Shown here in pieces: positions 5,201 through 64,000 of a DNA stretch of 64,000 bases. The position numbers and the translations under genes are program-made. Origin of the DNA: Dicyema japonicum (Eukaryota; Animalia; Dicyemida). The stretch covers positions 359,668 to 423,667 of the forward strand of contig RDEW01000006.1 of assembly GCA_011109175.1 (NCBI GenBank), read 5' to 3'. The number at the start of each line of letters is the position of its first letter. Positions within the stretch are counted from its first letter, which is position 1. Under the pieces are notes generated by a model, which did no database searches, was not told the DNA's origin, and was given only the letters and a program-made list of their open reading frames with translations.

Positions 5201-6270
5201 TCGTTGTTATGATTATGCCTGTTGTGAGAAAAGCACCTGAAAATAATTTTCCCACTTCGAAGAAAAAGGTAACAGCCAAGTCAACTGAGATGTGTTCGTC
5301 CTGTTGGCTTGTCAAAACTCGGAATCGTAGGATCTCTTGCTCTGCTTGTGGAGATTTCTTTCACCTCAGGTGTATCAAGCTATCCCAAGCCGCAGCGAGA
5401 GTGCTTGGAGTATGGCACTGCCAGTCATCTTCAGCCTATGCAGGGAGGTTCCCCGTGCCCGTGCCAACGTTAACTCTTCAGTTAACTTTTCAGTCACGGA
5501 CCCTGAAATATTCATACGTCTCATCTCTGAATTACGTTCTTCACGGACCATCCCTCTGAGGATTCCCAAGGCCATACGACCTGTTTCTGCGGAGGCCTTT
5601 TCCAAAACGATTGAAAATGCCCTCCGGACTAACGCAGTACATGATTGGATGCGCTTATTCAGTTTTGCGCCTTTCGCACAGGACTTGATCGGAAAGGAGT
5701 CTCTCGCCACCACCTTGAGGACCAACGTTCGTTCTTTTTGGGAAGTATCCACATCCCCAGTTGTCCCATGGCATTTAACCGTACGAGGGAGACACGTGGT
5801 CACATCGAGGAAGTCGAAGTGCTCCGTCTTAAAAGAACTGTTTGGTCGGAGTTAATCGAGGGTGGCACCCGCGCAGCCATCAGAGCACTTTCCTCGAGTG
5901 GACCACGAAAACCGACTCTTGACGCCTACAATATTTTACTGAACAAGCATCCACTGCAACCCCAAAACTTACGCCAAGTCGATCCCCCATCCAGAGTGAG
6001 TCTTCTGATTGCATCAAACGATGAGGTTCTCCTCGCAATATGGAATGTTGCTTTTAGTAGCAGTGTCGGGCTCGACGGAATGAGACCTGGCTACCTGAAG
6101 GATCTAACCTCTTTGTCCGTAGGAGACCAGGGACTTCGTTTTACGAATTCAATTACTTAACTTATGAACCGGATCATGTCTGGAGTTATTCCCGAAGTTA
6201 TCCTCCATGTCCTGTTCTCGACAATTTGATAGCCTTCGATAAGAAGGGAGGCGGTTATTCGCCTTTTGGT
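5200..6270 (+). mobile_element. CRE-like RLE-type LINE fragment with PHD finger and RT N-terminus
   Basis: PHD-like C..C..CSACGDFFHLRC..WHC in ORF 5209-5559; IPKAIRPVSAEAF and SSVGLDGMRPGYLKDL motifs shared with 57700-58550 and 61450-63180. Confidence 0.8.
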
Positions 6271-6912: not shown

Positions 6913-8375
6913 TTAGGTGAAGAATGATTTTTTACGAGATTTGATATAAATATTAGCAATGACGCCAGTAAGTATTATAAATAGTACCAATGACAACAGT
7001 AGTCCGACAACTCCACACACGATTCCAATTATTCGATGTGTCGTCAGTTTTTTTACGGATTTAGTTTCAGACAATATTAGATCTTTAAAACTTATTTTAT
7101 CTAAAATTCAGTCGGGTTCACTCACCATCTGCAATAGTATTATAAATAGTACCAATGACAACAGTAGTCCGACAACTCCACACACGATTCCAATTATTTG
7201 ATGTGTCGTCAGTTTTTTTACGGATTTAGTTTCAGACGATATTAGATCTTTAAAACTTATTTTATCTAAAATTCAGTCGGGTTCACTCACCATCTGCAAT
7301 ATTATGATGTTAATCGTGGTTTTTTTGTCCTTAATTTCAGTAGATGACTGTGTTTCAAAGCATCCTTCATCTAAAATTCAGCCGGATTTATTTACCATCT
7401 CCAATAAATTCAAAAATCAGATCATTGCGGAAAAATTGTAATTTCAGAGCTGAAATTTCGATAGTCACATTTTTATAGTTTTGTGAGATGAATCCACATT
7501 GATAAAATCCTCCCATTTTAATTTTTTTAAATTGCTTTTCCAATGAAACGCATTTATTCCTTCTGTACCCAACATAAACAGAAAATTTATAAATATGATA
7601 TGTATTCTCATATTGTTCATACGCCGTAATAGTTATAGTATGATCACTAGTCAATACATATTTATAGTCACTATAATAATTTGTTAGAATATTATAATCA
7701 TAATCACTGAAATGCTCATCTGTTATCTAAGAATCAATGTTCACGTGTACAATTCTGTTATTGTCAATATATGATATTTTGATATTTCCACTTATTACTC
7801 CTCTCATTATCTTTTCGTTAAATAAAAACCAAATCGGCGTATTTGGGTCATTATTTGGGTTACAGTCATTAGCTAAATAAATTTTAATTAAAACCTTTTC
7901 CAGTAAAATAATATAATCTACCATTATCGTGATATTGCAACTTGTTAGAATAAATTGTAACATATAAATGATTCGGAAATCTAATATGAGTAAAACCACA
8001 TCGGTAGTAATCCCCATATTTAGTTTTTGGTATCTTTGTGATATTTTTATAATGTTTACCACCTTAAGTACAACAAGAAAGTACCATAAACAATTTATGT
8101 TATTAAGTCAATAGTATAAAACTCATTGTAAAAGTGTGGAATAAATTTAAAATTTATATTATTAAGAGATAAACTATCCATGAGTCTTCCAGTCATCTAT
8201 ATGTTGATCTCTATTTAGCATCCATAACAGAAATTCCTAAATTTAAGGAAATATATACTTTAGAAGTATTTTTCTGTATTACATATGAGTCAATTAATAT
8301 ATATTTCCTACCACATTTTATTTTAACGAGTTTGCTAAAAAGAATAAATATTATAAAATGAATAGTTCCGTTCAT
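6913..8375 (-). pseudogene. Multi-exon type I membrane protein gene (signal peptide, two internal repeats, C-terminal TM), disabled
   Basis: Hand splicing: introns 8063-8084 (22 nt), 7873-7894 (22), 7727-7750 (24), 7371-7395 (25), 7266-7290 (25); N-term MNGTIHFIIFILFSKLVKIKC; repeats KTKYGDYYRCGF..VTIYSNKLQYHDNGRLYYFTG and KIKMGGFYQCGF..VTIEISALKLQFFRNDLIFEFIG; TM IIGIVCGVVGLLLSLVLFIIL..KSRKK; in-frame TAA at 8095-8097 and 1-nt frame break in exon 7291-7370; 5' exon structure ambiguous. Confidence 0.7.
6971..7300. repeat. 165-nt tandem duplication covering an intron plus the TM exon
   Basis: Units 6971-7135 and 7136-7300 differ at 2 positions. Confidence 0.95.
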
Positions 8376-13735: not shown

Positions 13736-13769
13736 NNNNNNNNNNNNNNNNNNNNNNNNNNNNNNNNNN
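13736..13769. other. Assembly gap (34 N)
   Basis: Run of N. Confidence 1.
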
Positions 13770-27306: not shown

Positions 27307-30100
27307 AGACAGATAACAGATAACATGATTTATTCGCAAAACCCCAACTAACTAAACAAGGTAAGAGTCATTAACTAAAGAGGAAAAACCAAGATTTGGG
27401 GTCGTCTATATCGGGGCACTCTCATGAGACACCGTATGTCTCTTCTCCGTAAAAAAAGCCCCAATTACAATGCGAGTTTCCACAAGCAATGTAATAAATC
27501 ACCGATTCTTCTCGTTTTTCTTTCGTATTCGTCATCAATTTCAGATGCTAAATCCAATCCATGTGCGAGTTTAATTGCATACCTTCTTGTCTTTTCTAAT
27601 TTAGTTAGTAGGACTGATTCCTCCTCTGTTTTAAACCAACCTTGATATCCATATATTAGGAAAGGTTCAATACACGTTCTGTAGACAAACATAAAAGTAT
27701 CTGGAGACAAATGAAAGCGGAGTAGGGACTTGAGCATTCCCGTAGCTTTCTCTCTTCGTATTTTGATGTGCTCTTTAAACGATCCTTTTTTTTAATGCAT
27801 ACTCCAAGGTATATCAGGTTTTCCGAGAACTTAACATTCCCTGTATCAACATATTGATTCTTCCTATTTCTCGCTATCCAGGTTACAGAACTTTTTTCTC
27901 TTGATAATGTCAATCCATTATTCCGACACCAATCTTCGATTTTCACATATGAGCTACTGTTCTTTTCCATGATATTGATTTATTTATACTAGTGTCCAAA
28001 ATTAGAATGTCGTCTGCGTAAATTATCATTTTGGTATTGATGTGTCCGGTTTTGGCACCTCGCTCATTATACAGTTAAAGAGGAGGGGACTCAAAATTGA
28101 ACCTTGTGGAACACCTCTACTTAGTTTTATCTTTTTAAGAGCATATTTCCCACACGAATATAAGACTCTCTTCCCATAAGGAAGTCTCTAATCCACATGA
28201 GCGCCGACTTTCCAATGTTCGCTTTTGACAATGTCTCGAGAAGTCCCTCATGCCAGACACTGTCAAAAGCCTTGGATATGTCCAAACACGTTGCAGTAAG
28301 GTATTCTTTCTTACTTATAGATTCTTGAATTGACTTCCTAAGTTCTCGGATGCAGTCTTCAGTTCCTCTATTTTTACGGAACCCCCACTGATTGTTTGCA
28401 AGAAAATTGTTTTCCTCAACCACTTTTGATAATCTATTGAAGACAATTTTCTCCATAATTTTTGAAGTTGAACAAATAAGACTAATTGGTCTATAATTTT
28501 CTGGATTAGATCTTGATTTTCCTTTCTTTCCAATCATCCGAACAATCGACTTTTTCCAGGTCGATGGAACGTGAGCAAGTTTCCACGAGGCATTATAAAG
28601 CATGGTTAATGCATCAATTAACATAGCATTTGCATTCTTGAATATTTTCATTGGGATAAAATCCCATCCAGGGGTTTTGTTCTTGCAGCTACAAATCGCA
28701 ATTTTTACTTCTTCAGGGGAAATAGGGGTACACATAGGACCCTTCATTGACACCATCCTATCATAGTGATGATTATTGCTTCGAAATTCACATGGAATAA
28801 TGGAAGCAGGATCTACTTCTTGAATTTTTGCTAACTGTTGCCGTAGAATTTCTGGGATTTCCCCCTTTGAAATACAACAACCATTGGATGATTTTAGGTG
28901 TATTTCATCACATTTGTCATCAGAGGATTTCAATCTCGCGAATACTTTCCAAAAGTCTGCATTCTTGTGATTGATCTTTGAGCATTCTCTTCTCCATTTA
29001 TTTTCCTGTTTTCGTTTGAATATTTCCATTAATTCATTTTTCACTAAGCTGATCTGAACCTTTAGCTTTTCCGAGTCGGGAATGTTCCAACATCTTTTCA
29101 GTTTACTTTCAAGTGATTTTTTCTCTCGATGGAGGGAATCTTCTTTTAAGCTCATTGATGAGCATCCATGCGGCATACAGAATTTTTTACTTCCATATTC
29201 GTCCAAATAACACAATATCAAAGTCCTAATTTTGTCATCCAAGTAATCAATATCTGAGGAGTCCAAGATCAATAGATCACAGACATTTCCCAGTTTCACC
29301 CGTATAAAATAATCGAAATCAACCCAGTTGACATTATTAAGGTTGTAGCCAACAAAAGTTCTTTCAGCAGATATAGGCCCCGTCCTTATTTCCAAAGTTT
29401 GTGGAAGATGGTCGCTTCCAATATCTTGCTCCACAAATGGGTGCTCACAAATTTTGCTTAGATTCTGAGGCATCACAAAAACTCCGAGCTTGTCCCCACT
29501 CCTTGGTGCAAAGTGATTAATTTCTACTGAAGTTAAAATCTTTAACTCTCCAGACTTCATCCATTTTACAAGGCATTTTCCATCTTGATTGGTTGCTACA
29601 CAACCATAGTCAGTATGTTTAGCGTTCATGTCCCCAACAAGGATTGGATATTCATTGTTTTCCATAAATTTGTCAACAATCCATGGATACTCTCTTAGTT
29701 TTTTAGAATAGATTCCTCCGATAGTTATCCATCCCATGGTTGTTTGTAGTTGAATGCTTGCTAGTTCACAAAGATTTTCTTCATTGATCGTGGGTAGTCT
29801 TGTATTTAAAGAAGTTTTGTAGTAAATTGAAGTTCCTGTTCCAGCACAAGAACCAGTCTTCCAAAAAATATCTAATGAGTCGTATCCATCAATTTTAAAT
29901 GGTCTTTTCTTCAATTTAGTTTCGTTTATAATTAGAACATCCATCTGGATCGTGCTGGCTAGAGCAACCAGCACTGAGGCCCGTTTCCGAAGAGAACGGG
30001 CATTAATCAGGGTTATCCTGACTACTTCTGGTTTTTTTGGTGACTGCCCTCTCTTCTTAAGAGCGCCACCAAATCTAGTAAAAATTTAGAATCCTTGGTT
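27307..30100 (-). mobile_element. Near-intact APE-RT LINE (I/Jockey-group-like)
   Basis: 615-aa ORF plus frameshifted RT tail (GVPQGSILSP, IYADD, YLGV) down to 27465; (gttatct)-type tail; flanked by ggcaaacgtcc. Confidence 0.95.
28127..29974 (-). CDS. Endonuclease-reverse transcriptase (APE + RT N-half), frameshifted after MLLKR
   Basis: INETK, LVGDMNAKH, IGSDH, KTPGWDFIP, NYRPISL, QWGFRKNR, LDISKAFDSVWH. Confidence 0.92.
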   Translation of the reverse strand: MLVALASTIQMDVLIINETKLKKRPFKIDGYDSLDIFWKTGSCAGTGTSIYYKTSLNTRLPTINEENLCELASIQLQTTMGWITIGGIYSKKLREYPWIVDKFMENNEYPILVGDMNAKHTDYGCVATNQDGKCLVKWMKSGELKILTSVEINHFAPRSGDKLGVFVMPQNLSKICEHPFVEQDIGSDHLPQTLEIRTGPISAERTFVGYNLNNVNWVDFDYFIRVKLGNVCDLLILDSSDIDYLDDKIRTLILCYLDEYGSKKFCMPHGCSSMSLKEDSLHREKKSLESKLKRCWNIPDSEKLKVQISLVKNELMEIFKRKQENKWRRECSKINHKNADFWKVFARLKSSDDKCDEIHLKSSNGCCISKGEIPEILRQQLAKIQEVDPASIIPCEFRSNNHHYDRMVSMKGPMCTPISPEEVKIAICSCKNKTPGWDFIPMKIFKNANAMLIDALTMLYNASWKLAHVPSTWKKSIVRMIGKKGKSRSNPENYRPISLICSTSKIMEKIVFNRLSKVVEENNFLANNQWGFRKNRGTEDCIRELRKSIQESISKKEYLTATCLDISKAFDSVWHEGLLETLSKANIGKSALMWIRDFLMGRESYIRVGNMLLKR

Positions 30101-30578: not shown

Positions 30579-33500
30579 GGCAAACGTCCCGTATTAATGA
30601 TTGAACCTTAAATTTTTGAAAAAATGAAGTTTTATATCTGAACAAAGTTTGCTTTAAACTAGTCAAATTATCCACAACATTAAAAAATATAATTTACATC
30701 ATTTTAATTATTGATAATATAAATTTTATTGAATTAAAATTTCTACTAAACAGAAAAAACGTTACTAAATGACTTTTCCTGATGATTTTCGGGACGCATT
30801 AAATAACATGCTATCTTCTTCTCAAAGAAACTTTGTGAAGGTCCTCCTTGGACATTACAGAAGATCTTACAACTCGGCATTGGAGCATCTCTACAACCAG
30901 TATATCGAGCCGACTATCAGCTTGTCAATGGGGCCTTCAAAGGGAAATGAGTTCGACACCCCTGACTTAATGGATACTTTTTCTCTTAGTTACATTGGTG
31001 ATTTTGCAACTTCAATTCAAATTGTGTGTTTCAGCTGTGTCTCGTCAAATTGTTAGTTTTCTTACGTTCTGTTCGTTGTATAACTCTAATATATATCCCT
31101 AAGTTTTCCTATCTCTGATGCAAAGCTGAAAGCTTAAGAACTCCTAACTCTAATGCTATTATAAATGATCAAAAATAATAATAACTGTTTTTATTAGAAA
31201 AAATTGAGAAATTTATATTGTAAAATTATTCTAGCTTTGCTAAGTCTCTGCTATTTTCTAGAATCACACTTCCATCTTCTCCTTCTAAATCAATTATTCC
31301 TGTATCAGATATTCCTTTAACATGATATATGAATGTATCAATGTGTTCGTTTAAGCCACTTTTTCGTGTTTTTTTATTATTATCAAGATAGACCCTTCTA
31401 ACAACGCGATCACCGATGTTAAAGATAGAAATATCATTCTTCCACCTTCTTTTAGTTAACATTTTTCTTTCAGCAATGTTTGAATTTAAAATTGCTTTTG
31501 TTCTCAAAGTTTCATTTGATGACCAAAACCATGCAAGATATTCAGTTGCTTCAGTTTGTGTTTCTTCATTCCATAAATCAATTTGGTTGAATATTTCATT
31601 CATATCCTCTTCTGAGTAATGATTATTTATAGTTTCATTGGCAGAAGCTCCGAACATCAATTTAAAAGGAGCGTGCAACGTTGTTGAATGCTGTAAAGAA
31701 TTATAGGAACTTGTAATTTCTTCAATTATGTTTATCCATTTGAAATTCCACTTGTTTTGAAAAAAAATAGTTGATCCGGCAAGGAGTCTATTAGTCTGAA
31801 TAATGATGTAGTTCTTATGAAATTTCGTTTCTCCTTCAGCAAATTGGATGGTAAAATTTGGGATCTCAGATAGGTTATTATTTCTTGCTTTTGTAGCATA
31901 GTGAAGTGGACAACCTTCATAACAAAAAAAAAAACTAGCGTGAGCAAAAATCTATTATTATTCTATCTGAAGTAAACCGTTAAAAAATGAAAATTTGTGA
32001 GAAATTTAAATTATTAAAATTACTAATCATTATAAAGATAGGAATTAATTAATTTATTGATTTATTTTTCATTAAAAAAAATTATTGATTTCTAACGGCT
32101 TTAACGCCACGTATAACGCCTTTAACGGCTCGTATTCAACCTGGGCTCGTATTCAACCGGTCACAATAAATAAATAGGCCGAAAACAGCTCATCGATGTA
32201 GACATCACTTTGATGGCGAAAAATATCTTGGGAGACGACAATGTTACTGAAGTCACTGTAGACTCACTTGAACAAAAAATGGAAAAATTACCTTTGTGAA
32301 CATCTATGTGTCTCCGCCTGGTTCTTTCCCGAAGCAATATGCTATACCCAATTTATCCACTTTGGTTTCCTTGAACGACGTGATCATGGGTGGGAATATC
32401 AACGCAAAATTACGTTCCTAGCTTGGTAGAACTACAAGTAAGACAATAATTAGAACTCAATTGTGCATCCTGCATAGATGAATTACCGAATTTGCCCCCT
32501 ACTATTTACTTAATCCTGTGATATTACGGGCCGAGAGAGACTAACAACAATGAACACTCTCAGAAAGTGATTTATTTTTAGATAAGAAACAATATGTCAA
32601 ATGTTTAGACACATAAGGTGTTCTAAATTGTCTGGCTTTAATCACACAAATTTCATTCTCCATGTAAAAACCTGGATACTTTCCATTGCAGATTTACCCA
32701 TGTCCAGCGAAACCTGGATTGCAGTGACAACCGTGATCTCCGTCTACGGTTTCACATACAACATCTAGGTGACACTTTGTAGAAACACAATTTAATCTCC
32801 CATTGTCTAGTTCATCTTACAAGATACGATCTCGAAATCATCAGTCCTAAGATCCTTGTGACCCTAATCATCCTCGGTTTCATAAAAGCATCTTAGGTTA
32901 AAGCATCCAAATTTTTAGAGAGTATTTTTAACACATGTTGCGTCCAATCCATATTTCGATCATTAGTAAATGGGAATATCGTTCTCCCATCGGGGCGTTT
33001 CCATCAATAAGGGAGAAACTAGTGGGGCTAGCAGAGGAAAGTGCACTTTTTAAGTCAAGTTCAGACCACATGTCGGGAAATACCCATAAATCAACTTACG
33101 TGACAAGGGATGATAATCCATAGAGCAATCCAATGTCTACACAGAATTTGTGTTTATCACAAACTTTAAGGTCAAGAACGAATGAGGCTGCTATTCTCAT
33201 ATTCATCGTCAGAAAATTGCCAAATTCGTCACATGGATAAAATCTCAACCAAGTATTCGTTTCAAAAACAGACATTTAGTTCGGTCATCCGGATCATTAA
33301 GGACTATATCGATACCTCCACGGCTCCTGATAGTTACAAAGAATAAGAGTAAGGACAGTATCCCCCAATAACATCCACATTTGGTTCCGAATAAAAGTAT
33401 ACACAAATGCATCTATAGTCATCAAATATAGATAATCACTTCAACGGTTGACCTAATTTTACTGTCAAATAGAAATATGACCTAATTTTAAGGTAGTGGA

Positions 33501-37690: not shown

Positions 37691-40327
37691 ATTGTGGTGT
37701 GGATAATGAACGATCCAGTTATATCGTTTTTATTATTATTATTATTACCCCAGGATCACTGGGTCAAAGAAAAAGAAATAAAAGTTCTCATCTAACTAAG
37801 TGATCCCAGACCGACAAAGGTGAGGACGAGTCCGGCGAGGTCGAAAATCCTGAACAGCTCTTCTCATTGGACATGGCATCGGCTCAAAATTTCTGTATGA
37901 TTGTAGATAATTCAATAGTATTTGGAATAGAGGAGCTCGGTAGAATAGCCTCCTTTAATAATTTCCGTTGTAGTTCAATTAAAAAGTTTTCAATGGGTTG
38001 GATATTGTGATCTGGTCCAATTAACTTTGCAGTCTCCTCGATTGCAGATAATTTCAATGAGGAAGATCGTGACATTTGCATTGCCCATGAAGGACTTGCA
38101 TACGTCATCGTTGGTCGGATAAATTGTTTGTAAATAGGGCAAAAATCCCAGTTCGATCTCTAAGTGTTTTTGAGAGCACTTTTAAAATTCTCATTTTTTT
38201 CAGAGCAGAAGTTATTTTGTTTTCAACATGCCGGATAAAGGTGAGTCCCTGATCAAAGGTTACTCCCAGAATCTTCGGTGTTTTGTTAATAGAGATAGCT
38301 TCATTCTTCATAGAGACTTTTGGTTCGATACAGAGCTGTCTCTTGTAGGTAGTAAACAGTGTGACAAAGGACTTTGCTGCTGATGTGTCAGTCACTGCTT
38401 CGAGAGCCATAGTTCCGAGTTGTCTAGCATTTGTTGAGCCAACTGAGTTTCTGATTGAATGCTTCTGTTCTTGGAAGCAAGAATGATATCGTCGGCATAG
38501 GAAAGGATTAGACAGTTTTCATCACAGGTTTGTGGAATGTCGTTTATGTAGAGATTGAAGAGTTGGGGTGATAGTGGGAGCCTTGAGGGACTCCATTTGG
38601 GAAATAGCGAAATCTTGATTTGATGTTGTTGCAGAGTACTTGTGCTCGTCTTCCATTTAGGAAGTTTCCAAGCCAAAGTTTCAGGTTCGGATGGATGTTG
38701 GTTTCGTATATTTTCTTTGTTAGGAGTTTCCTAGGTACTGAGTCGAACGCTTTTGTAATGTCCACGGATATTATTACTGTCCTCTGATGGGGTTTGGGGA
38801 GTTAAATCCTTCCGCAATGAATTGTGTGAGGGTTGTGAAGTGTGTTGTTGTCGAATGGTTGTCCCGGAATCCGTGCTGGGTCGGAGGTATTGAGATTGAG
38901 TCTTGTATTTTTTCCAAAACAAGCCTTTCAAGGATCCTTGAGACCGGACTTAGAATAGATATTGGGCGATAGGAAGATGGTTCATCTATTGGTTTGTTGG
39001 GTTTTCGGATAGGTCTGATTAGAGACTTCTTCCATATTTCAGGGATTGTATTTGTGTTAATGGATAGGTTGAAGATATAGGCTAATAGTTCCAGGGCTCG
39101 ATGGCCTAGGTGCTTCAGTTCACATGTGGTTATGTTGTCTGGTCCTTTGGCCTCTGAGTTGTTGGCCTTAGATATGGCTCTGCGAACATCCTGACTAGTA
39201 AATAGATCCAGTCATCGGAGCGTTTCGGTTCAATCTTTTTCAGGAATACTTGGTGTTCTTTTGAAAACATCCTGTAGGATATAGACGTGTAATATTTTAT
39301 CAGAGTGTCTGGTTTTATGTAGACTTCGACTTTTCTCTCTGGGGAGGATCTTTTGATGTTTTTGATCCACTTCCACACTCTTTGCATTGGGGGGTTTTTG
39401 TAGAGAGCTTTCGATAGTCTCGTCCATCTATTTGCATTTTCTGTCTTTATGTTGTTGTCGATCTCTCTGTTCAATTCTCGTATTTTCCTGATGTTCTCTT
39501 CTGTTGGCGATTTTACCATCTTTAGATTATTTCGTTCTCTGATCAGATGTTTCGTCGTTGTGTTAAAACGTTTTGATGACGTTGGTTGTCTCCCCATAGG
39601 AATGTACTTCTTTTTCGCATCGTTTATAATGGAGTTGAACCATTTCACTAATTGTTCGACGGAGGGAAAAGTGGGAAAATTTAATAGTCCAATACAATTA
39701 TCGACAATTCCTTGAATCCTTTCAATTCGCAAGGCTGTAGTTAGTTATTGTTGGGCATTGTCCTTTTATCCGTGACCTTGTTTTGACCTCCAAAAATATT
39801 GGGTTGTGGTCACTACTGGTGTCATACTTCACTGACCAGTCAATAAGTGGGGCCATCATCTTCCCTCTTTTGTAGTAGGTTTGTCCTGTCAGCCACAGTG
39901 GGTGCTTTGCATTGAAGTCACCACAGATAATCACATCCTTTAGTGACGCGAGAGGAGTGAGTCTGGGGGCACTGGACGAGCAGGAACTCAGTGGTGGGAG
40001 ATATGCGTTGACAATTGTTATTGATAGTCTTGGAATCGTATTTTGGTAACCAAAAGTTCGAGATTTCCATATCCTTTAAGCATAGTGTAAGCACTGTTGG
40101 TTATGTCCTCAAACGGAATGCCGTTGCGGATAACTGTGAGAAGACTAAGTTTGCCAATTTCTGTCACGGCGAATTACTGTGAATCCCGGAAATACTGGTG
40201 TTGAATTCTTTGGAGAAAGTTTAGATTCTTGAATTAGCAACAGATCAATGTGATTTTCTTTCACAAATGTCCGAAGTTCGAATATTTTGTTCTTGATTCC
40301 ATTTATGTTCAGTTGGACTATTCTGGC

Positions 40328-40357
40328 TGGTCCAGAGTTTGTCTCAACGTCTCCGCA
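40328..40357 (-). other. 2A-like (StopGo) motif variant CGDVETNSGP
   Basis: In ORF 40145-40570 immediately before the APE domain; S replaces the first P of DxExNPGP. Confidence 0.8.
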
Positions 40358-40403
40358 GCGGCGCAGGCCTTCCTTATTGGTCCACCCGTGAAGATAGGGA
40401 AAG

Positions 40404-40457
40404 TGTGGTTCTTTATTTTCAAATGCCACCACGTCGTCGGCGAGCCACATGACATTT
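40404..40457 (-). ncRNA. Pseudoknot motif copy at the element 5' end, P4 absent
   Basis: aaatgtca/tggcattt (P1), tggctc/gaacca (P2, one mismatch), gcc/ggt (P3); starts about 9 nt from the TSD-defined 5' end. Confidence 0.6.
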
Positions 40458-41004
40458 TTTTTATTAATCGTTTTTAGTGGAATACTTGAAGTTGAATATA
40501 TTAATAATACTGTAATCACATATTTAATAAAAGACAAAATAAATATAATTGACGTTTTTTTTTTTTTCAATCTGGAAATTTTGATTGCCAGCTTGAAAGG
40601 AAGAATAATGATATAGCACTCAGAATATTAACTACAAATGATTCAAATGATTTATATAGTTATTGGAGATTAACATTATATGCTGTTGGTGGAGATAAAA
40701 AATACGTGAATCCTTAACTTTACTAAAAAAGATACAACTAATATAGAGTCGTCAAAAAAAGGTTACCATGACTCAAATGAATTTTAAAAAGCAGATTAAA
40801 GTTAACTGAATGATCAGAGTTATCAAGGATCTGTGTTAGTTTTTGAAAATAATTCATATATGGACTATATATAGTCAAATTCAAAAATAGTTGTAAAAAA
40901 TGTCTTGATTAATTATGATTAAGTATTGCACATAAATGTTAAACTTTAAAAAAAGTAATTCCATTCTATTTTCGAATCATTAATTATAATGTTAATTGGT
41001 AAAA

Positions 41005-46957: not shown

Positions 46958-48689
46958 TGAAAAGGTTTTACAATTATACAACTGAATACGAATGGGATCA
47001 GGAAGAAAATCTTTGAACTCCGGACACTCTTCCTAGAGAATGAGGCTGACCTCGCTTTAATACAGGAATCCAAGCTATCTCCCTCCATACCAACACCCTC
47101 TTTTCCCGGATACACAGTGATCCGTAAAGATCGTCAGGGAGGACGCGGAGGAGGACTACTTACTATTATAAAAAACGATATTCCTTTTATGTATACAACT
47201 CAACGAACCTCAAAGCTTCTTGGCTCCGACAAGACTTTGGAGCAAATTACTGTCAAAATCGAGTTATTCCCGTCTTTTTGGATCCATTTGGCTAATTTAT
47301 ATATTCCTCCATAAGGATCGTGTCCGTCATCTTACACCCCTGATTTATCACACATTTCAACATTGAAAAATCTACTGTTATGTGGGGATCTAAATGCACG
47401 ACATCCAGTTTGGCTCACTTCCCAATCCTCTGATAACCGAGGAGAACTCATTGCAAATTATCTTCCTGACCTGATTATACTGAACAACCCTAACTCACAT
47501 ACGAGGATCCCATTAAGGATGACTGAATAAGCTGCACATCCCCAGACTTAACATTATGCTCACCTTCTCTGGCTGGACTCATTTCTTGGAACGTCTTTTA
47601 CGGCTTCTCAAGTGACCACAATCCAATCCTTCCAAAACTGAGAGGTCTTCTACGGTACAGGAGACGGTCGGCGGAATCAAAAAGATTCAAGGATTACACG
47701 AAGGTTGCCTGGTCTGGTTTCAGTAACCTTGTGGATAAATTCTTGGCTCGGAGATTATCCTCCCAATACGCTCTATTGATGAGGCCGCAAAAATTATCAG
47801 CGCTGCCATTCAGAAAGCTGACCATATTTTTATTCCTATATCGTCATACAAGAAGTTTATTCCTACCCTCAGCTCTTATACAATAAGTCTTATAAAACAG
47901 AGAAATGTTGGACATGAAGTTTTTGACAGCCCTCAGACAACTGAATAAAAGGATCTGTCAGAACATAAAAGAACACAAGGACAAGAGATGGCAGCATCTA
48001 GTTAACCACCTCGACAGGAAAAGTTCATCCCGACATTTCTGGAAAACTCTTAAACAAGTCAAGTCGGAGCTGGATGATGCAGACGGAACCGGAAAGTCTT
48101 CTCCTGAACACTTATGCCACCTACATCCTAACACCCTTATGAAACATTACTCTGGAATTAGCTTCAAACCATTCTCGAAATACCTGGACATTAAGGTGCG
48201 TGCCCATAAACCGAAGAAGGAACCTTACCACGAACTATTCACAGATGACCAAATCTTGGATGTGATCACCAGATTAAAGAGCTCACGGGCGTGCGGGCCT
48301 GACAAATTGAAGGCTGGGAAACCAGAGACAGAACCTGCCTCCTACAGGCCTATTTCCGTTACCAGCACACTGTCAAAAATTATGGAGAAACTTGTATTAT
48401 CAGTCATTATTCCGTATCTTCCACGTCCTATATTTCAACATGGTTTCCTCCGCGGTAGGTCCACCGCTACATACTTGGCAACCCTATCGCAGTTCATTGC
48501 CGACGGTTTTAACACCCATCCCCCGCCTCACAAACGCACAATCTTGGTTTCTATTGACATCAACAAAGCCTTTGACACTGTTTCGAGGAAAATCCTGGTT
48601 GGAAAAATATTTTCTACTAATATTCGTCCGAATGTGAAATTATGGCTGGCCAACTTTTTGTCTGGAAGACGTGGAAGAGTAGTCAGTGT

Positions 48690-49650
48690 GATTATTATTA
48701 TTTAAGCCAAAGAAACACCGTCTTAACCAATAACTAATATTCAGGTGATCCCGGCATCTCTCAATAATCGGGCCATTTTTTCTCGATGCTCCGACTGTGA
48801 TCCCACGCATTTTCTATACGGACGGGGTCTTTTCCTTTCCTCCTCTGAAATTGCCTCCAGTTGCCTCTATGATAGACTCGAGTGCTCTGGGGGCAATTTC
48901 TATATCTGTATATTTTTCTAGTAATTTTTTTGCTCTTGACTGGATCTCTTGAATTTTTGTTAGGTTCGTTGCCGACAGGTTAGATCCCCATGCAGCACAT
49001 GCATAGCCTATTGTTGGCTCGACATACTGCTTGTAGAGGGTCCCGATACCTGGCGGATAAATTCCTCCACAGTTCCAAAGGAAGGCCTTTACAAAATTGA
49101 TCTTCTTTGCACAGGTTGATATGATAGATTCCACATGGGCTGAGAAGCAGAGGAAAGTATCAAAAGTCACTCCAGTATCTTCTGCGATTTTTTTGTGGTA
49201 TAGGTACTCATTTAACGTGACATCAATTGTTTGCGTTCCCATCTTTCTATTCTTAGTATAGAGTAACTGCTGAGACTTTTCGGAACATGCATTTAATCGA
49301 TTTTCGCACAACCATCCAAATATGTTATTTAGTATTCCTTGTAGTCTTTCTTTAGCATGACATTTACGTCTCTAGATGCGACAACTATGTCATCGGCATA
49401 AGAAAGTAGCATGTCATTATTATTCATAGGTACGGGGAGATCACTCGAAAACAAATTAAAAAGGATTGGTGACAGAGGAGATCCTTGGGGTACACCATTG
49501 GGTAATAATCCTGATTTGGAACTCTTGTTTCCGACGGACACTTTCCCTCGGCGTCCACTTACGAAATTTGTTAACCATAACTTTAATGGTGCATCAATTT
49601 TTGTCAAAAATATTTTTCGTATGAGGATCTTCCTTGGGACAGAGTCGAAA
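48690..49650 (-). mobile_element. ingi/Vingi-like LINE 3' part (RT C-half, (TAA)n tail)
   Basis: GVPQGSPLSPILFN, LSYADD, LYKQYVEPTIGYACAAW; a related + strand RT piece follows at 49650-49930. Confidence 0.85.
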
Positions 49651-53904: not shown

Positions 53905-55575
53905 TTAATGGAGGAGAACGAAATTTCATAAGAACTGCGTCATTATTCAGACTAATAGACTCATTGCAGCTCAACTATTTTTTTCAAAGCAAGTGGAATT
54001 TTATTGCACGTGTTCGCTGTGGAAGAAGATAAACAGAAAAAGATATTTATTGAAAATGTTCACCTCAAAAATAGACATCCTGGTCGTGATAGACTTCTTT
54101 CTCTTCTAAAGAATCTATTCTATTGATCTTGCAGAGATGAAGTTATGGTTGTTCTCAGGTTTTGTTCACAATGTCTGACAAGACGGCTTGTGTAACACCT
54201 ATCAGAGCATATACATTGAGAGAAAAGTAATAGTTAACTATTGTAATTTCAGATATATTTTTGATTTAGTTGATCTGGAAGAAACTTGTTCATGAGATCT
54301 CCAAAGGTCGGACACGACTTAATTAGACAACATAACATGATTTACGATGCTACTCAAATTTCAATGAAAATTTTCGCTGGCTTTCAGTTGGGTTGATTCT
54401 TTTCCAAATTTTGCTGGACAAGACCTCTTAAGAGTAAATCGGCTACGGAGGTGTCAAGTGGAATAAAGAGCATAATTTTAATGTTTGGAAAACCGACCAT
54501 TTTGCACACGGACAATGGCAAGGAATTTGTAAATGAAAAAATGTTCTAGTTATGCTCAACATATGGTATAAAACACGTCACGGTACGTCCTAGGTGTCCT
54601 TGGGTGCAGGGACAAGTCGAGCGTCTGAATCTGACATTGAAATTTATGATTTCTTCAACCTGCTTTTCAAAGAATTTGAATTTCAAATGGAAAGACATAA
54701 TTGAAAAAATTACAAGTTCCTATAATTTTGTTTAGCGTTCAACAACTATGCACGCTCTTTTTAAATTGATGTTCGGAGCTTCTGCCAATGAAACCATAAA
54801 TAATCATTACTCAGAAGAGGAAATGAATGAAATATTAATGCAAATTGATTCATGGAATGAAGAAACACAAACTGAAGAAACTGAATATCTCGCATGGTTT
54901 TGGTCATCAAGTGAAACTTCGAGAACAAAAACAATTTTAAATTCAAACAACGGTGAAAGAAAAATTTTAACAAAAGGAATGTGGAAGAATTATATTTATA
55001 TTTTTAACATCGGTGATCGAGTTGTTAGAAGGGTCAATCTTGATAATAATGAAAAAACACAAAAAATTGGCTTAAACGAACACATTGATACATTCATATA
55101 TCATGTTAAAAGAGTATCTGCCACAGGAATGATTGATCTAGGAGAAGATTGTAGTGTGATTCAAGAAAATAGTAGAGATTTAGCAAAGCTAGAATAATTT
55201 TACAATATAAATTTCTTAATTTTTTCTAATAAAATCAGTTATTATTATTTTGATCATTTATAATATCACGTTGAGATCATTTATAATATTATTAGAGTTA
55301 GGAGTTCTTAAGCTTTCAGCTTTGCATTAGAGTTAGGAAAACTTAGGGATATATATTAGAGTTATACAACAACAGAACGTAAGAAAACTATCAATTTGAC
55401 GAAACACAGCTGAAACACACAATTTGAATAGCAAAAATCACCAATGTAACTAAGAAAAAAAGTATCCATTAAGTCTGGGGTGTCTAACTTATTTCCCTTT
55501 GAGGGCCGCATTGAGAAGCTGATAGTCGGCTCGATATACTGGTTGTAGAGATGCTCCAATGCAGAGTTGTAAGAT
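53905..55575 (+). mobile_element. Ginger-like transposase (same family as 27206-32165), with intron and captured LINE fragment
   Basis: HLKNRHPGRD..CSQC zinc finger; 26-nt intron 54227-54252 restores TLREKYIFDLVDL; ILHTDNGKEF, QGQVERLN; C-terminus 54748-55197. Confidence 0.85.
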
Positions 55576-57699: not shown

Positions 57700-58550
57700 A
57701 TCTAAAGAATCAAATGAGCACTGGACAGATAGCATCTCCCTGAAACAGCTGAAAATGGATTTTTTCCACCTCGCGTGTACAAAGCTATCCCAAACAGCAG
57801 CGAGCACATTGTAGTATGGCACTGCCAGCCATGCCTTGGCCTATGGATGGAGGTTCTTCGTGCCCGCGTCACTGCTAATTCTCCCGTTAATTACCTTTCA
57901 ACCACGGACCCCGAAACATTCTTACGCCTCATTTCTGAGTTACGTTCTTTACGGACTATCCTTGTGAAGATCCCCAAGACCATAAAACCTGTCGCTGCAG
58001 AAGCCTATTCAAGAATAACGCAGGAGTAACGTAGCACAGGATCGATTTGGGCACAATAAGGAGTCTCTCAAACCACCATGAGGACCAATATCGTTCTTTT
58101 ATGGGAAGAATCTACATCCCCAGTTGCCCCACAGCTTCTAACCTTACGCAAGAGATACATGGCCTAGGATGTCGAAGTGCTTTGTCTCAAGAGAACTGTT
58201 AGGTCGAAGTTATTCAATTGTGCTACCCACGCAATATCAAGTAACTTTCTTCAAGTAGACCGAGAAAACCGACTCCCAACGTCTAATATATTTTACTGAA
58301 CAAACCTTTTCTGCCTAAGCCCTGGGAGTTGGTATTACGAATTAAATTACTTCACCTGTGAACAGTACTACTATCTGGAGTACTTTCCGAAGTTATCCGC
58401 CATGTTCTATTCTCCGCCAATTTAATTGCAATCAGAAGGCTGGCTGCTAAGACATTAATTCCACACAATTCCACAATCTTAAGTAAAAGTTAGTGTCTGT
58501 GTTCGCCTGGAATGCGAGGCTGCTGTCCATTCAGTGAGAAGATTCCTTAA
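57700..58550 (+). mobile_element. Degraded CRE-like copy
   Basis: Closely parallels 5350-6250 (WHCQ, FLRLISELRS, IPKTIKPVAAEAYS). Confidence 0.8.
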
Positions 58551-58967
58551 TATTTTATTTGATTTTTACCATCGAAGTCAGCAGATAACATCTGAATCAT
58601 TTGAATTTTCTTTTCATTGGTGACAAAATATTTAAGGACAGGAACACCGGACAAATGAGGGATTTGATGGAACGGGAAATCATTTATATAAAGATGGACT
58701 ATAACATAGAATTTTTTTTAAAAAAGGTTAAATATTCATAATTCGTTCACAATGAATGGAAAATGAAAAAAATATTAATTCTTAAATCTTAAATACAATC
58801 TTGGGGTTATTTTAATCATTATCCTATTCAAGATTGCTTGTATCAATCGACGACTATATAAATCTATGATTGCTTTGCTTCTGATAATAACTATAAATAA
58901 CAATTATGAAATTACAAATATTTAAGATTTTTCGATATATATAATCAAGTGATTCTGCATCATTCAA

Positions 58968-59794
58968 ATGATAATCGCCTGGCGTATTTTATTTTTAACT
59001 GGATACGGAAGTAAATATTTATAAGTAACTTTAGGTTTCAGACATACAGATAATCTCGTTGAATTTAGGAGTGAAATAATTACAAATGGTTCATTAATGA
59101 TTATTTTTAGAAACAAAAATTCCAACATATTCACTTGGTTAAAATTAATTATTATTTTGAGAACCTACGACGCCACGATATTCTAATGGTTTGATTAATG
59201 ATTATTTGAGAATCTTTTATAATCTCTCAAATGGAGTGGGTAAGAAAATTATTATCACTTGGTTCAATCTAAGATTATATTTAAGTTCCCGTTATGGGTT
59301 CTGTTGCGAATGATGTAATTAGAAATAATTTGCGAGCACATTCAAATGTTTAATTAATTATTATGTTGAGAATCAACACCAGCAAATTTAAACGGTTCAT
59401 TAATAATTATTTTAAGAACCGACAACGGCAACAAATTCAAATGGTTTAATAAATAATTATTTTAAGAATCTTTACAAATTTCTCAAATGGAAGATTTATG
59501 GAAAAGAATCTCAGATGGTTTACTCTAAGATTATACTTAAGTACACTATATAAACCGTGATACGAATGATGTAATTAGGATTATTTTGCCAGCACATTTG
59601 AATGGTTCATTAATGGTTATTTTAAGAACCGACTACGCCAGCATATTCTTATGGTTCATTAATGATTATTTTAAGAACCGACGAGGCCAGCATATTCTAA
59701 TGGTTCATTAATGATTATTTTAAGAAACGACAATTCCAGCATATTCTAATGGTTCATTAATGATTATTTTAAAATTCGACGATTGAAACAAATA
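58968..59794 (+). pseudogene. Micro-exon gene: at least 13 exons (internal exons 24-63 nt), all phase 1, 22-24-nt introns; secreted Thr/Pro/Ser/Asn-rich repeat protein
   Basis: Exons 58968-59010, 59035-59088, 59111-59137, 59162-59188, 59211-59261, 59286-59348, 59371-59394, 59417-59443, 59467-59517, 59542-59604, 59627-59653, 59676-59702, 59725-59751; all internal lengths divisible by 3, no stops; donor after exon 6 lacks one G; intron 59752-59773 ends AA. Confidence 0.88.
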
Positions 59795-61449
59795 GTTATT
59801 CTTGACTATCCAAGATATTTAATTAGTTTAATTCTGCGGTTTTTGATGGGTAAAAATTTGTTTCTTTATTAGCAACATACAATTAAATATTTGAATATTT
59901 AGATATGTTCCTTTTTGTATTATTTTTCCAATCATATTGTTAAACACATTAGGCAAGGTTTCTTGCATTTGTAATTTTATGATCTGAGACAACCACATAC
60001 TTTCTCTATTGCTAAACGATTGAGGAAAATGTCAACTAAAGCTGAAGATAGGAAACGATGGTTCTTACAAAATGAGGTAAATTTGAATTTTTATAAAATC
60101 GAATATTTTCTCATTTGAATTTTAAATCCATTTAGGTATCTCATTCCAATATACATAAGAACGGGTAACCTTTTCTCTGTCGGCCTTAGAGATCTGCAAA
60201 AACCAAATACACCTGTCGGATCTCTGGGAGCGTCCACTCTTGGCTGTTAAGTACTTGTTAGATTAAGAGAAATCAGGAGTAAATAAATTAGAACTGTGAC
60301 TTGATTCCCAGCATTAAAATCTAATTAACCTATATTTAATTCCTACGGTCGGAATGAGGCTTCAAATATACGATTGTAAGAACTCGTTAGTCGAGTAGAG
60401 AAGAGATATATCCTTTTTAATGCAGCCCAGTCCCGGGGGTTTCACAAGATGGTCAGTATTGAACTATACTATAATTTCTGTCTTTTAGCATTTTTACGAA
60501 GGAGGCGATTTTTCACAAGTTGTCCCAAAAATGAGACAAAAATGATTTTTTGATATAAAAACAAATTAGGAACCTAGAAGGATTTATCCCCGATTAGACT
60601 ACGTTGAAAATACACTTGATCTCGCAAATAGGCCATATGTGGTTCCTTAGATTTTTGTGGCAATTTAAAAAAAGTAAAATCAATAATTTTGATTAAATAA
60701 TAATGAACAAAAAATGTATATTAGTTTTATTAAAATAAAATGTAATTCCTAATAGTTTTTTCTTTCCTTCAATAATACTTGCTTTGTACTTTCTTTTTGA
60801 AAAAAGTGAAACATCATGTTCATTCTCAAAATTGGCTAAGAGTTCCCTATTTATTGCAGTTAATTTAACTGAAAAATCGATTCAGTCTTTATGTCTTGTT
60901 TTTTGAGATTCTTGTTCACTAATTTTCAATAATGTTTCAATTTCCGTGTATTCAATATGTAAAAAATCCTCAACTTTGAGATGATCGAAAATGTCTGTTC
61001 TTCTGATTTATGCATCATTATTATCAATTTCAAGAATTTCGTTAGTGGAGTTTTAAAAAACTTTGAAACAATTCCTGATCTTCTCTTCAGATACGTCTGT
61101 CTTCCCAAGCCATTTTTGTAAAAAAGACCGTTCCTTAAATTCAATTTCTTGTAAGAATTATAGATCAAAATATTTTGAGTTTCCAATAATTTTGATTTCA
61201 TGACTGGCATCCTCTTTCTGACTCCGATAATCAACTAGTCTTACCAATACAACACGTTAGAGACCACAACCGATCTTCATGAAGATAAAACACTAACATT
61301 TTAACAAATGCATCTCCCAACAATAATTATCTATGACCTCTACAATTGGTAAAGCCTCAACCAATACGTATGTTATGTAATTAGAAGTTCATCGTTGACC
61401 AACCAAATGGTTCACCTCATTGAAACCCACATCATTATTATCAATTTCA

Positions 61450-63180
61450 TGAACTCCCTCACCCGGTTTACCAAAATCCCACACCCAAGGAGTCGAGAGA
61501 ATCAATATGAGTCTCCCTAATCCTCTGGGATGATATCGCAGAGTTTTCTATGAAAAAGGTAGAATGAATCGGAACTCAAATTCAGATCAATTGCTTCGCA
61601 CTTTTCATTGTTAAATTCCAGACCAATTTTTCCACACAAACGTCTGATCGATGCAACTGTGGAGAGAATATCATCGGGACTTCCACCGAGAATACAATCG
61701 TCCAGATACCAGACGTTTAGTGGAGTGCAACGGTCCTGGGCAATGTGGTCGATAGACAAGGAAAATAGAAGAGATTGAGTGGGTCCCCTGTTGAACTCCG
61801 GATCAGGACGAAATAATTCCACTGCCAAAAACAAGAGGGGATGGATCCGAATACGCGAGATATACAAAGGGATAAATCTGAGGAATCCTCCTCCTACAGG
61901 TATTAAGAACGGTGTCCCTTCTGACTGAATTGAAGGCATTCCGGAGGTCCAATTTGAATAAAACTCTGTCCTCAACATTCAATTCAGCTGATTGTGATCC
62001 AAATTCTCTCACTGCGTGGATCCCAGCTTCACAGCCGCCATTGATTCGGACACCAAGCTGCGAAGGACAAAATTCGACTGAAATTCGGGAGATAACAAAA
62101 CGACAAGCCATTTTTGCGGATAAACGTCGAAATACGTTTCCAATTGCAATGGGGCAAATGCCACCATCTTTCTTTCCAAGGCCCGTTAGATTCGCTGAAA
62201 AGAGGAGATTCCGACCAAAATCGGAAACGTTTCCGGAAAGCATGCGAGCTACGAGATCCCGGGTTCGCTCCAAGAGTAGCGATCCTGGCCTGCCGACAGA
62301 ATGGGACACCAAGTCTGACAGATGGTCAGGTTTGAGACCGTAAACTCCTCCACTGCTACTTCTTCGGAAAGAACAAAGAGCGTTGTAAATGGCTGAAGTG
62401 GAAATATCATGCATAGATTGTTCTGGACGAACAGGTTTACAAACGTCTTCTGGTTTTGGAGGATGTTTCTGTCCCAATATACAGAGTGTCTCCTGAGTGG
62501 CTTTCACTGGGTCATAATCCGTACAAACAGTTCGAACTGCAGCAGTAAGATCGCCCTCCATCAATTTCCTCCTGACACGAGAGCGAAGCCTCTCAGGAGC
62601 CATACTGGATGTTTGGAATTGGACTTTGGGAAGTAATCAACTGGGGAAACAAATAATTCTTCAGCTAGGGACTCCCATGAATCCATAAAGGCACTCACGC
62701 GCTTCTTCAGGACATGGGATAGAGAGGGTTTCCGAGAAGATGGGGCAGGCTTACGCTCTAACCCCATAGCCAGGACAGGGAAAGAAAAAAGAACCATCCA
62801 ATCCTTGTTCGAGCTATTGGACACAGCTTTCTCAATGCAAGAAGAAAGGGCAGAAGCAATTGAGATCCGGGAAGCCTTGGGGATCCTGACAGGGATAATC
62901 TTCCTTTGTCGCGTGTTTGATAATAAAACCAGAAAATCCTCCGGAGACATGGCTTCCATAAGATCTGATACAGATGATGAATACACAAAATGATCATGAG
63001 GTTCAATTTTAGTGAGTTCCAGTCGGCACGACCGGCACGACCACGAGGGAAGTGATCGAGCAATTTTTTTGGATAGTTTTTCACAACCTATGTGGTAGTA
63101 ACCAACACATACAAGAACATCGAATCCCGCACTTGCGAGAATTGGATACTCAGCACCCTTTGCATGAGGTGTCTTCGTGT
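61450..63180 (-). mobile_element. CRE-like RLE LINE (PHD + RT)
   Basis: CVGYYHIGC..WSCRSC; SSGGVYGLKPDHL, GICPIAIGNVFRRL, KLDLRNAFNSV, WYLDD. Confidence 0.9.
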
Positions 63181-63260
63181 AGTACATCACAAAAAACAGA
63201 CATGAATAGATAATAGGAGAGAGGACTGTATATATTAACGACGACAACGACAACAACGAT

Positions 63261-63520
63261 CATCTTAGATTAAACCAAGAGATAATATTTTTTACCCTTT
63301 CCAATTGAGAGATTATAAAAGATTCACAAATAATCATTAATCAAACCATTAGAATATGGTGGCGTCGTAGGTTCTCAAAATAATAATTAATTTTAACCAT
63401 GTGAATATGTTGGCATTTTTGTTTCTTAAAATAATCATCAATGAACCATTAGAATATGCTGGCAAAATTATCCTAATTACATCATTCGTATCACGGTTTA
63501 TAAAGCGTACTTAAATTTAA
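63261..63520 (-). pseudogene. Paralogous micro-exon gene fragment
   Basis: Exons 63447-63509 (63 nt), 63398-63424 (27), 63347-63373 (27) and about 63276-63324; introns 22, 24, 22 nt; last acceptor TG; RFINRDTNDVIRIILPAYSN-ETKMPTYSH-EPTTPPYSN-ESFIISQ. Confidence 0.85.
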
Positions 63521-63720
63521 ATCCTGCCGGCCTTTTTTCCCCAAGCACGTCGAAATTTGCCTTTTTTATTCTACCAACAGTAGCATTCCAAATCATCTCT
63601 GGGGGATTTTCCATATATCTGTTTAAAATCTCTTTCTTAATTGTCATACAATAATCTTCACTCACATAATTTTTCCACAATTAAACGATCCAAATAAGCT
63701 CTCTTCTTTTTAGCTTTGTC
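63520..63720 (-). mobile_element. Small LINE (RTE-like) fragment
   Basis: W..IKK..FDVLGEKRP pattern typical of the APE-RT linker. Confidence 0.4.
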
Positions 63721-64000
63721 TATTCCGAAATATCTTTTCATTCTGCAACCAGCGGTTTATGATCACTATAAGTGATGGTGCCTCCATAGCTGCGGACTCT
63801 GTTAGTAAAGACGAAGAGATCTTTTACATATAACATATCAATCTGATGTATATCCGGACATAGTCACCATTTCCATCCTTTCTGAGTCGATTCCACGTAG
63901 TTTTATGCCTCGCATTGTGGTCGAATGCAGAATTAGAAATAAAGTAGTCAAACATGTTACAAAATTGCACGAGCGATTTTCCTAACATATTCCTCCTTCC

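Follow-up and report, generated by a model that had tools for sequence, protein, structure and literature searches.

The closest described counterparts of the locus reported here are the micro-exon genes of schistosomes. Schistosoma mansoni has 35 of these genes; in each, a leader exon comes before 10-20 exons whose lengths lie between 6 and 81 nt and are in most cases multiples of 3 (PMC10526429). A review also reports a micro-exon gene antigen from the myxozoan Tetracapsuloides bryosalmonae (PMC8481699). Dicyema japonicum is a dicyemid that lives in the octopus kidney. Its introns are 20-27 nt long and carry as signals little beyond GT(a), AG and a few A residues, and animal introns shorter than 30 nt have been reported only for myxobolid myxozoans and D. 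japonicum (PMC13644364). The D. japonicum genome has 36.7% GC, 49% repeats with many LINEs, and a gap rate of 4.1%; for the published annotation, cDNA hints were derived after repeats with more than 30 copies had been masked (PMC6736024). Since these repeats were masked before cDNA alignment, arrays of exon-intron cassettes would be hidden from that annotation.

The window analysed here is a stretch of 64,000 nt of D. japonicum DNA (contig RDEW01000006.1, positions 359,668 to 423,667 of the forward strand), and all positions below are counted from its first letter. Its GC content is about 36% and retroelement ORFs are abundant, in agreement with the published D. japonicum genome. Debris of reverse-transcriptase/endonuclease ORFs makes up most of it (811-1455, 3065-4907, 28127-29974, 39130-40570, 47905-48705 and 61517-63256). 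Two closely similar 150-residue ORFs in opposite orientation, 31226-31678 on the minus strand and 54748-55197 on the plus strand, lie 23 kb apart and probably belong to a repeated element. The repeat pair 57758-58429 and 5353-6233 is 71-78% identical, and its downstream member ends about 540 nt upstream of the start codon of the array described below. Assembly gaps (runs of N) are found at 13736-13769 and 24375.

Exon and spacer structure of the array

The array on the plus strand looks like a minisatellite with a period of 46-51 nt; Tandem Repeats Finder gave periods of 46 and 49, the latter with 91% matches. When the spacers were located one by one, the sequence could be read as 14 exons and 13 spacers between the ATG at 58968 and the stop codon TGA at 59803-59805 (Table 1). 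All spacers are 22-24 nt long and 11 of the 13 are GT..AG, properties which place them within the dicyemid micro-intron class. The internal exons (24-63 nt) all have a length divisible by 3 and all are phase 1-1 (12 of 12 in both cases). Once the spacers are taken out, an open frame of 180 codons with 0 internal stops extends from the ATG to the TGA. The cassette spacers (2-13) are all mutually homologous; intron 1 is not homologous to them, yet is alike in size and phase. An internal TTAAT/CTAAG motif is present in the array spacers, which begin with GTT, so that their third base is T, as against the weak preference for A (GTa) in the published D. japonicum logo. The spacer motif has 7-9 matches in the 64-kb window, where 0 are expected, one of them on the minus strand at 63423-63447. 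Three TATA-like motifs upstream of the ATG form a candidate promoter, in DNA that is AT-rich.

Two spacers lack a splice dinucleotide, and this copy is therefore probably a dead, decayed gene copy. Read-through at the first of these lesions would meet a stop within two codons.

The original prediction, that the apparent minisatellite consists of micro-exons and micro-introns, is well supported by the frame, the exon lengths, the indels, the codon-position composition, the start codon, the hydrophobic N-terminus and the stop. The internal exon lengths given there (24, 27, 51, 54 or 63 nt) and the 1-1 phase hold for 12 of 12, the peptides assigned to each exon are equal to those obtained here, and the higher-order short-short-51-63 repeat was found again. 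Other details needed correction. The spacers, given as 22 nt long, measure 22-24 nt. The start of the claimed extent, 58968-59794, stands, and its end moves to 59805, since the frame runs on to the TGA. Both predicted splice-site lesions are present, and their positions are corrected to 59349-59350 and 59772-59773.

A second fragment of the family lies on the minus strand of the same window, with 92% identity to 59085-59278 and 85% to 59531-59720. Reverse-transcriptase/endonuclease ORFs flank it on both sides. It is a dead copy, because one spacer lacks AG, one exon has been reduced to 49 nt and both ends are cut by retroelement sequence. The array is all that the two loci have in common, their flanks being unlike. 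A different exon order at the second locus was considered and rejected; the same 27-27-51-63 cycle is entered there at the 63-nt exon.

Table 1. Features of the array and of the second family fragment (positions in the 64,000-nt window)
Feature	Position	Strand	Description
Candidate promoter, AT-rich stretch	58855-58945	+	3 TATA-like motifs: 58855-58863, 58892-58899, 58936-58945
Exon 1	58968-59010	+	43 nt; ATG and hydrophobic N-terminus; ends in phase 1
Spacer/intron 1	59011-59034	+	24 nt, GTAAAT...TTTAG
Exon 2	59035-59088	+	54 nt, unique sequence, phase 1-1
Spacer 2	59089-59110	+	22 nt, GT..AG; higher-order copy A
Exon 3	59111-59137	+	27 nt; higher-order copy A
Spacer 3	59138-59161	+	24 nt, GT..AG; higher-order copy A
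Exon 4	59162-59188	+	27 nt; higher-order copy A
Spacer 4	59189-59210	+	22 nt, GT..AG; higher-order copy A
Exon 5	59211-59261	+	51 nt; higher-order copy A
Spacer 5	59262-59285	+	24 nt, GT..AG; higher-order copy A
Exon 6	59286-59348	+	63 nt; higher-order copy A
Spacer 6	59349-59370	+	22 nt, without GT; higher-order copy A
Exon 7	59371-59394	+	24 nt; higher-order copy B
Spacer 7	59395-59416	+	22 nt; higher-order copy B
Exon 8	59417-59443	+	27 nt; higher-order copy B
Spacer 8	59444-59466	+	23 nt; higher-order copy B
Exon 9	59467-59517	+	51 nt; higher-order copy B
Spacer 9	59518-59541	+	24 nt; higher-order copy B
Exon 10	59542-59604	+	63 nt; higher-order copy B
Spacer 10	59605-59626	+	22 nt; higher-order copy B
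Exon 11	59627-59653	+	27 nt; first of three 49-nt cassettes
Spacer 11	59654-59675	+	22 nt; 49-nt cassette
Exon 12	59676-59702	+	27 nt; 49-nt cassette
Spacer 12	59703-59724	+	22 nt; 49-nt cassette
Exon 13	59725-59751	+	27 nt; 49-nt cassette
Spacer 13	59752-59773	+	22 nt, without AG; 49-nt cassette
Exon 14 (last, unique)	59774-59805	+	32 nt with stop; 10 codons after the split junction codon, then TGA
Higher-order repeat copy A	59089-59370	+	exons 3-6, spacers 2-6
Higher-order repeat copy B	59371-59626	+	exons 7-10, spacers 7-10
Lesion 1	59349-59350	+	spacer 6 without GT at 5' end
Lesion 2	59772-59773	+	spacer 13 without AG at 3' end
Second family fragment	63262-63509	-	cyclic permutation of the array repeat, frameshifted
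63-nt exon, second locus	63447-63509	-	followed by spacer, 27-nt exon, spacer, 27-nt exon
Spacer without AG, second locus	63325-63346	-	
51-type exon, shortened to 49 nt, second locus	63276-63324	-	two single bases lost
Terminal spacer, second locus		-	broken off after 12 nt by retroelement

Coding signal, repeat history and predicted product

The first alternative to be weighed is that the array is a plain minisatellite or satellite without coding function, whose unit measures 49 nt and whose higher-order repeat measures about 260 nt. The GT..AG ends and the frame would then be by-products of copying, and nothing would be spliced or translated. From the exon composition, an open frame of 180 codons has a chance probability of P ~7e-7. 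Most of this apparent weight comes from copies that are not independent, which is a point for the satellite. With each repeat type counted once (~89 codons), the probability is still P ~1e-3, to be multiplied by ~1e-2 for exon lengths that are multiples of 3, as they are in all four independent exon types (54, 27, 51 and 63 nt). The same rules are obeyed by parts of the array that are not copies of the 27-nt cassette, namely exon 1 with its ATG and hydrophobic leader, the non-homologous intron 1, exon 2, the exons of 51 and 63 nt, and the terminal exon with its stop, and this also speaks against a satellite. The other two spliced forward frames contain 11 and 24 stops, the three reverse frames 5-13, and the unspliced array DNA 18-28 per frame. 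Base composition differs sharply between exon and spacer and by codon position: the spacers are 48% T and 4% C, the exons are 17% C, and within codons C makes up 31% of second positions and 6% of third positions. A non-coding minisatellite carries no constraint tied to a frame; in the array, indel lengths, stops and composition all track the partition into exons and spacers.

As a null for spliced ORFs, the longest ORF that could be built with any GT..AG spacers of 20-26 nt was determined in the array and in 200 dinucleotide shuffles. Under strict rules the longest ORF had 133 codons on the real strand and 54 on the opposite one; the shuffles averaged 53 codons (sd 20, maximum 118). That shuffles yield ORFs of up to 118 codons in so permissive a search is in line with the satellite. 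Because long ORFs were built in shuffles and also, falsely, through decayed transposons, the comparison serves as a generous control only, and the dynamic-programming search was dropped as a gene finder for being too permissive.

The two higher-order copies of the 27-27-51-63-nt exon repeat (59083-59468 and 59343-59726) are 74.6% identical. Between copies B and A the exons have 30% mismatches and one 3-nt indel, and the spacers have 19% mismatches and indels of 1 and 2 nt; the difference in divergence has p=0.036, and the indel lengths are not what a satellite would be expected to give. Between the two loci, exons and spacers diverge by 7.8% and 5%, which is not significant, and per-site variability is equal in the eight 27-nt exons (0.157) and the ten 22-nt spacers (0.150). 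Faster evolution of exons than of introns was therefore rejected as a main argument, being only weakly true at these loci. Values of pN and pS were 0.13 and 0.14 between the two loci and 0.18-0.33 and 0.28-0.49 within the array. With pN~pS, the substitutions gave no sign of purifying selection between the loci or within the array, and dN/dS, tried as a coding test, does not discriminate. Nor was there any excess of non-synonymous change in the two loci and the array copies, and so no support for diversifying selection. Both the pN~pS values and the about equal variability of exon and spacer parts are compatible with a satellite; dead copies that decay neutrally, or a repeat protein that evolves fast, would also account for the pattern. 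The frame was kept open across 50 substitutions between the higher-order copies, with P ~0.08 under random substitution. On the sequence evidence as a whole, a coding origin of the array appears well supported and continuing constraint modestly supported.

The arrangement of the exons points to the way in which the array may have grown. Downstream of the higher-order copies there are three nearly identical 49-nt cassettes and then the unique last exon. Aligned to two consecutive cassettes, the 63-nt exon can be read as 27 nt, a relic of a 22-nt spacer without GT or AG, and 14 nt, with a 13-nt deletion; its net gain is 9 nt. The alignment of exon 10 to the cassette tandem scored 29, compared with a maximum of 27 in 300 shuffles, a significance that is modest. 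This suggests that longer exons arise by cassette fusion, in which a micro-intron is inactivated and the frame is restored by deletion. Elsewhere in the window, at 6914-8087 on the minus strand, there is a likely micro-intron membrane-protein gene in which an exon cassette of about 45 residues, encoding a transmembrane helix, is present in two almost identical copies, each with its 25-nt intron GTGAGTGAACCCGACTGAATTTTAG. This gene shows that GT..AG introns of 25 nt also occur outside the array, and it is a further case of duplication of an exon+intron cassette.

The conceptual protein of the array contains 11% Ser, 11% Thr, 9% Asn and 7% Pro, a composition that is weakly mucin-like. Its hydrophobic N-terminus is confined to exon 1 and it has no hydrophobic C-terminus. 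Of the 14 residues encoded by exon 1 most are hydrophobic, and small ones stand at the end; the stretch is short and has an Arg in the middle, and its Kyte-Doolittle 9-residue means are 2.0-2.3 at residues 1-10, making it a candidate for a short signal peptide. Six N-x-S/T sequons occur where 3.4 are expected from composition, an enrichment that is not significant, and all six span exon junctions. The product is proposed to be secreted and glycosylated because of these junction-spanning sequons and the missing C-terminal anchor. A Pfam search with the peptide of exons 8-13 gave 0 families at E up to 10, and searches with the products of exons 8-13 and of exons 1-6, both chosen to span intact spacers only, found no match among 5.8 billion proteins. 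Candidates in the peptide searches had to be 0.55-1.75x the query length and to share at least three 5-residue words with it, and the database may lack the organism's transcripts, so the empty searches are uninformative. Rfam and tRNA scans of 58000-61500 and 58000-64000 gave nothing above threshold.

Sequencing reads, copy number and a hint of splicing

The read data comprised a 2019 sample with four runs and a 2017 study with one, the organism being the same throughout; runs X1-X3 and X5 were aligned to 58500-64000 of the window. Runs X1-X3 are DNA-like, with even depth and contigs collinear with the spacers (exact X3 contigs have depths of 418-543). One DNA-run contig, 59421-59628, passes through the spacers without any difference. 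Being DNA, these runs say nothing on splicing, and they confirm the sequence. The original prediction had proposed a check of the raw reads at 59348 and 59773. An exact X3 contig covers 59736-59859 with no substituted letter, and the missing AG of the second lesion is therefore also present in the reads; the first lesion is covered by no zero-difference contig among the contigs listed.

Summed depth is not a copy number. Relative to exact single-copy contigs of the three DNA runs, it was ~1300-3000 times as high over 59604-59787, ~40-70 times over exon 1 with the 5' flank (58500-59051), ~10 times over exons 3-7, and ~2-6 times over the 3' flank (59788-59971), that is, low copy. We read this as no more than an order of magnitude, about a thousand similar cassettes with many shared 5' ends and few shared 3' ends; the depth of the 5' flank indicates that this flank is common to many paralogues. 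Contigs of the DNA runs (depth 130-1550) join 59627 to 59819 and 59843 to 59925; in the stretch 59819-59925 they therefore represent paralogous loci with another arrangement of the 3' flank and short deletions.

Run X5, of the 2017 study, carries the automatic label 'DNA?' but behaves like RNA; the only D. japonicum data set of 2017 named in the literature consulted is a stranded transcriptome (PMC5447306). In X5 the low-copy 3' bin 59788-59971 has a depth of 2.1 while the 5' bins that are repeated 40-70 fold have 0, and the cassette-to-transposon depth ratio was ~8-30 times lower than in the DNA runs. In one X5 contig (depth 6.9), five letters stand in place of the 125 found in the genome between 59648 and 59774; they complete a 27-nt exon, and this exon abuts the last exon at 59774, exactly where excision of the 22-nt spacer would join the two. 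On the left the alignment ends at the first base of the exon, though the neighbouring spacer is the family's most conserved part. The shorter side of the joint has 23 letters. Because its exon letters differ from those of the array locus, the contig comes from another copy, either a paralogue or another allele. A paralogue whose last intron is intact would give such a contig when its mRNA is spliced; coming from one contig in one run, this is a hint. Among the contigs of all four runs over 58500-64000, none had a joint that skips an exon. The splice-junction check that the original prediction had called for was thus answered in part: one contig lacks a spacer, skipping was not seen, and X1-X3 are DNA-like. 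In metagenome scans, neither the spliced junction nor the unspliced unit used as a control was matched; this collection is therefore without the organism, and the blank for the spliced junction is uninformative.

Within the region aligned there is also a 34-nt piece, 60201-60234, common to many contigs whose flanks are unlike the window (10 contigs in X3); in X5 it has 255 unlike letters on each side and a local depth of 29. It may be a short dispersed conserved element, and Rfam and tRNA scans found nothing there.

For the non-coding satellite, the reads add a unit present on the order of 1000 times, and the peptide searches gave no protein or transcript hit. A contig from which exactly one spacer is gone is difficult to reconcile with it. 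Together with the frame, the indels and the composition, this makes a satellite that was never spliced or translated an unlikely explanation.

Gene-family interpretation and comparison with known systems

The array is probably a decayed, non-functional member of a large lineage-specific family of micro-intron genes, in which the cassette is a symmetric micro-exon plus a micro-intron. The repeat unit of the family would consist of one phase 1-1 micro-exon and one 22-24-nt GT-AG micro-intron. In intact copies the spacers would be spliced out to give an mRNA for a protein of ~180 residues, with a short hydrophobic leader from exon 1, the unique exon 2 and then the repeat units. These would be 9-residue units of the form E-P/T-T-x-P-x-Y-S-N, alternating with a 38-residue module from the 51- and 63-nt exons. 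The period of 49 cannot be divided by 3, yet unequal crossing-over or slippage could add or remove cassettes with the frame intact, since splicing, and only splicing, makes each cassette frame-neutral. Exon skipping would be frame-neutral in the same way; in this family it is hypothetical. The copy at 58968-59805 would have been inactivated through the loss of two splice dinucleotides.

Expression of the family as a whole is put forward more tentatively, as a possibility that we hold to be somewhat less than even. Dicyemids would then carry a large expressed 'spliced minisatellite' gene family, with about a thousand cassettes at many loci, encoding secreted glycoproteins variable in length and sequence. 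Gain, loss and fusion of cassettes, and possibly exon skipping, would make these glycoproteins variable at the interface of parasite and host, as a convergent and far more compact counterpart of the schistosome micro-exon genes in a host without antibodies.

The original prediction went further and took the array for a variant-generating secreted or surface antigen. For this, the array would have to be an active gene, which makes many variants by skipping of symmetric exons and tolerates its lesions, for example by skipping the affected exons. Any subset of the internal exons could indeed be skipped in frame, since all are phase 1-1, the design is that published for schistosome micro-exon genes, and the 3' end region is present in the RNA-like run X5. 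However, spacer 6 has no GT and spacer 13 no AG, and read-through stops within two codons; the X5 contig, unlike the locus in its exon letters, belongs to another copy; and no exon-skipped joint was seen in the reads. The substitutions do not help either, with pN~pS, no excess of non-synonymous change and exons only slightly more diverged than spacers. To our knowledge, cephalopods, the presumed hosts, have no antibody-based immunity, which weakens the rationale for antigenic variation. The antigen proposal was not upheld, and an active, variant-producing gene at this locus is improbable. Least probable of all is that the array belongs to a transposable element, as its cargo or as an internal repeat, and owes its copy number to transposition rather than to a host gene family: the window consists mostly of reverse-transcriptase/endonuclease ORFs, a transposon copy ends at ~58429 just upstream of the array, the second fragment sits between retroelement pieces and the 5' flank is repeated 40-70 fold, but the two loci are alike in the array alone and not in their flanks, copy number is low over the 3' flank 59788-59971, neither terminal repeats nor transposon protein domains adjoin the array, and the second copy is interrupted by transposons, not carried within one.

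If intact members of the gene family are spliced and secreted, some of the repeat-masked 'satellite' of a 67-Mb parasite genome is in fact a large gene family. The published annotation of 5,012 genes would then probably miss it, as repeats above 30 copies had been masked in the genome from which the cDNA hints were taken. Such a family would represent a new coding mode for a tandem repeat, in which the unit carries its own intron and the period need not be a multiple of 3. It would also mean that micro-exon gene architecture arose a second time, independently, in a parasite, here in a host without adaptive immunity, and would bear on what the design is for, immune evasion or else a glycoprotein coat or adhesion to the renal epithelium. 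The value of the present copy is that of a well-resolved damaged specimen of the family, not of a working gene.

In mucin-type VNTRs, tandem units within one exon encode a repeat peptide containing Ser, Thr and Pro, and the number of units sets the length of the protein. Their units are multiples of 3, whereas the period of the array, 46-51 nt, is in frame only after removal of an intron from each unit. Fibrillar collagens, with their 54-nt exons, and the PEVK region of titin have symmetric short exons, each encoding one protein repeat and amplified by duplication. Their introns are of ordinary size, so that these genes are not satellite-like, and their proteins are unrelated to the product of the array.

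The lengths of the array spacers and their GT, AG and internal A fit the published class of dicyemid micro-introns, which were described in ordinary genes (PMC13644364). A literature search found no paper that combines dicyemids with micro-exon genes or with exon+intron minisatellites. New points at this locus are the higher-order repeat, the relic of an intron inside the 63-nt exon, the splice-site lesions in both copies, the profile of read depth and a first hint of splicing. The micro-exon gene of Tetracapsuloides, which the original prediction had mentioned, is borne out by the review (PMC8481699); it provides a second parasite lineage outside the flatworms with such a gene, in a different phylum.

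The comparison with schistosome micro-exon genes, also made originally, proved apt as a matter of design (PMC10526429). Neither Pfam nor the protein searches gave any similarity to schistosome MEG proteins or to any known family, and the likeness is therefore an analogy, not membership. In both cases a series of very short exons, most of them divisible by 3, comes after exon 1, which encodes the leader in the schistosome genes and a candidate leader in the array, and in both cases the genes form multi-copy, lineage-restricted parasite families that are poorly handled by automatic annotation. All 14 exons of the array, at 24-63 nt, lie within the 6-81 nt of micro-exon genes, and symmetry holds for all 12 internal exons, the second fragment having one exon of 49 nt. 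Alternative splicing and secretion have been shown for the schistosome genes, while for the array they are hypothetical, and the presumed host of the array is without antibodies. The schistosome introns measure 100 to ~5000 nt, a range in which the spacers of the array do not fall, being 22-24 nt and 5-200 times shorter, and in the array the exon+intron cassette is itself the tandem unit, with a higher-order repeat built upon it.
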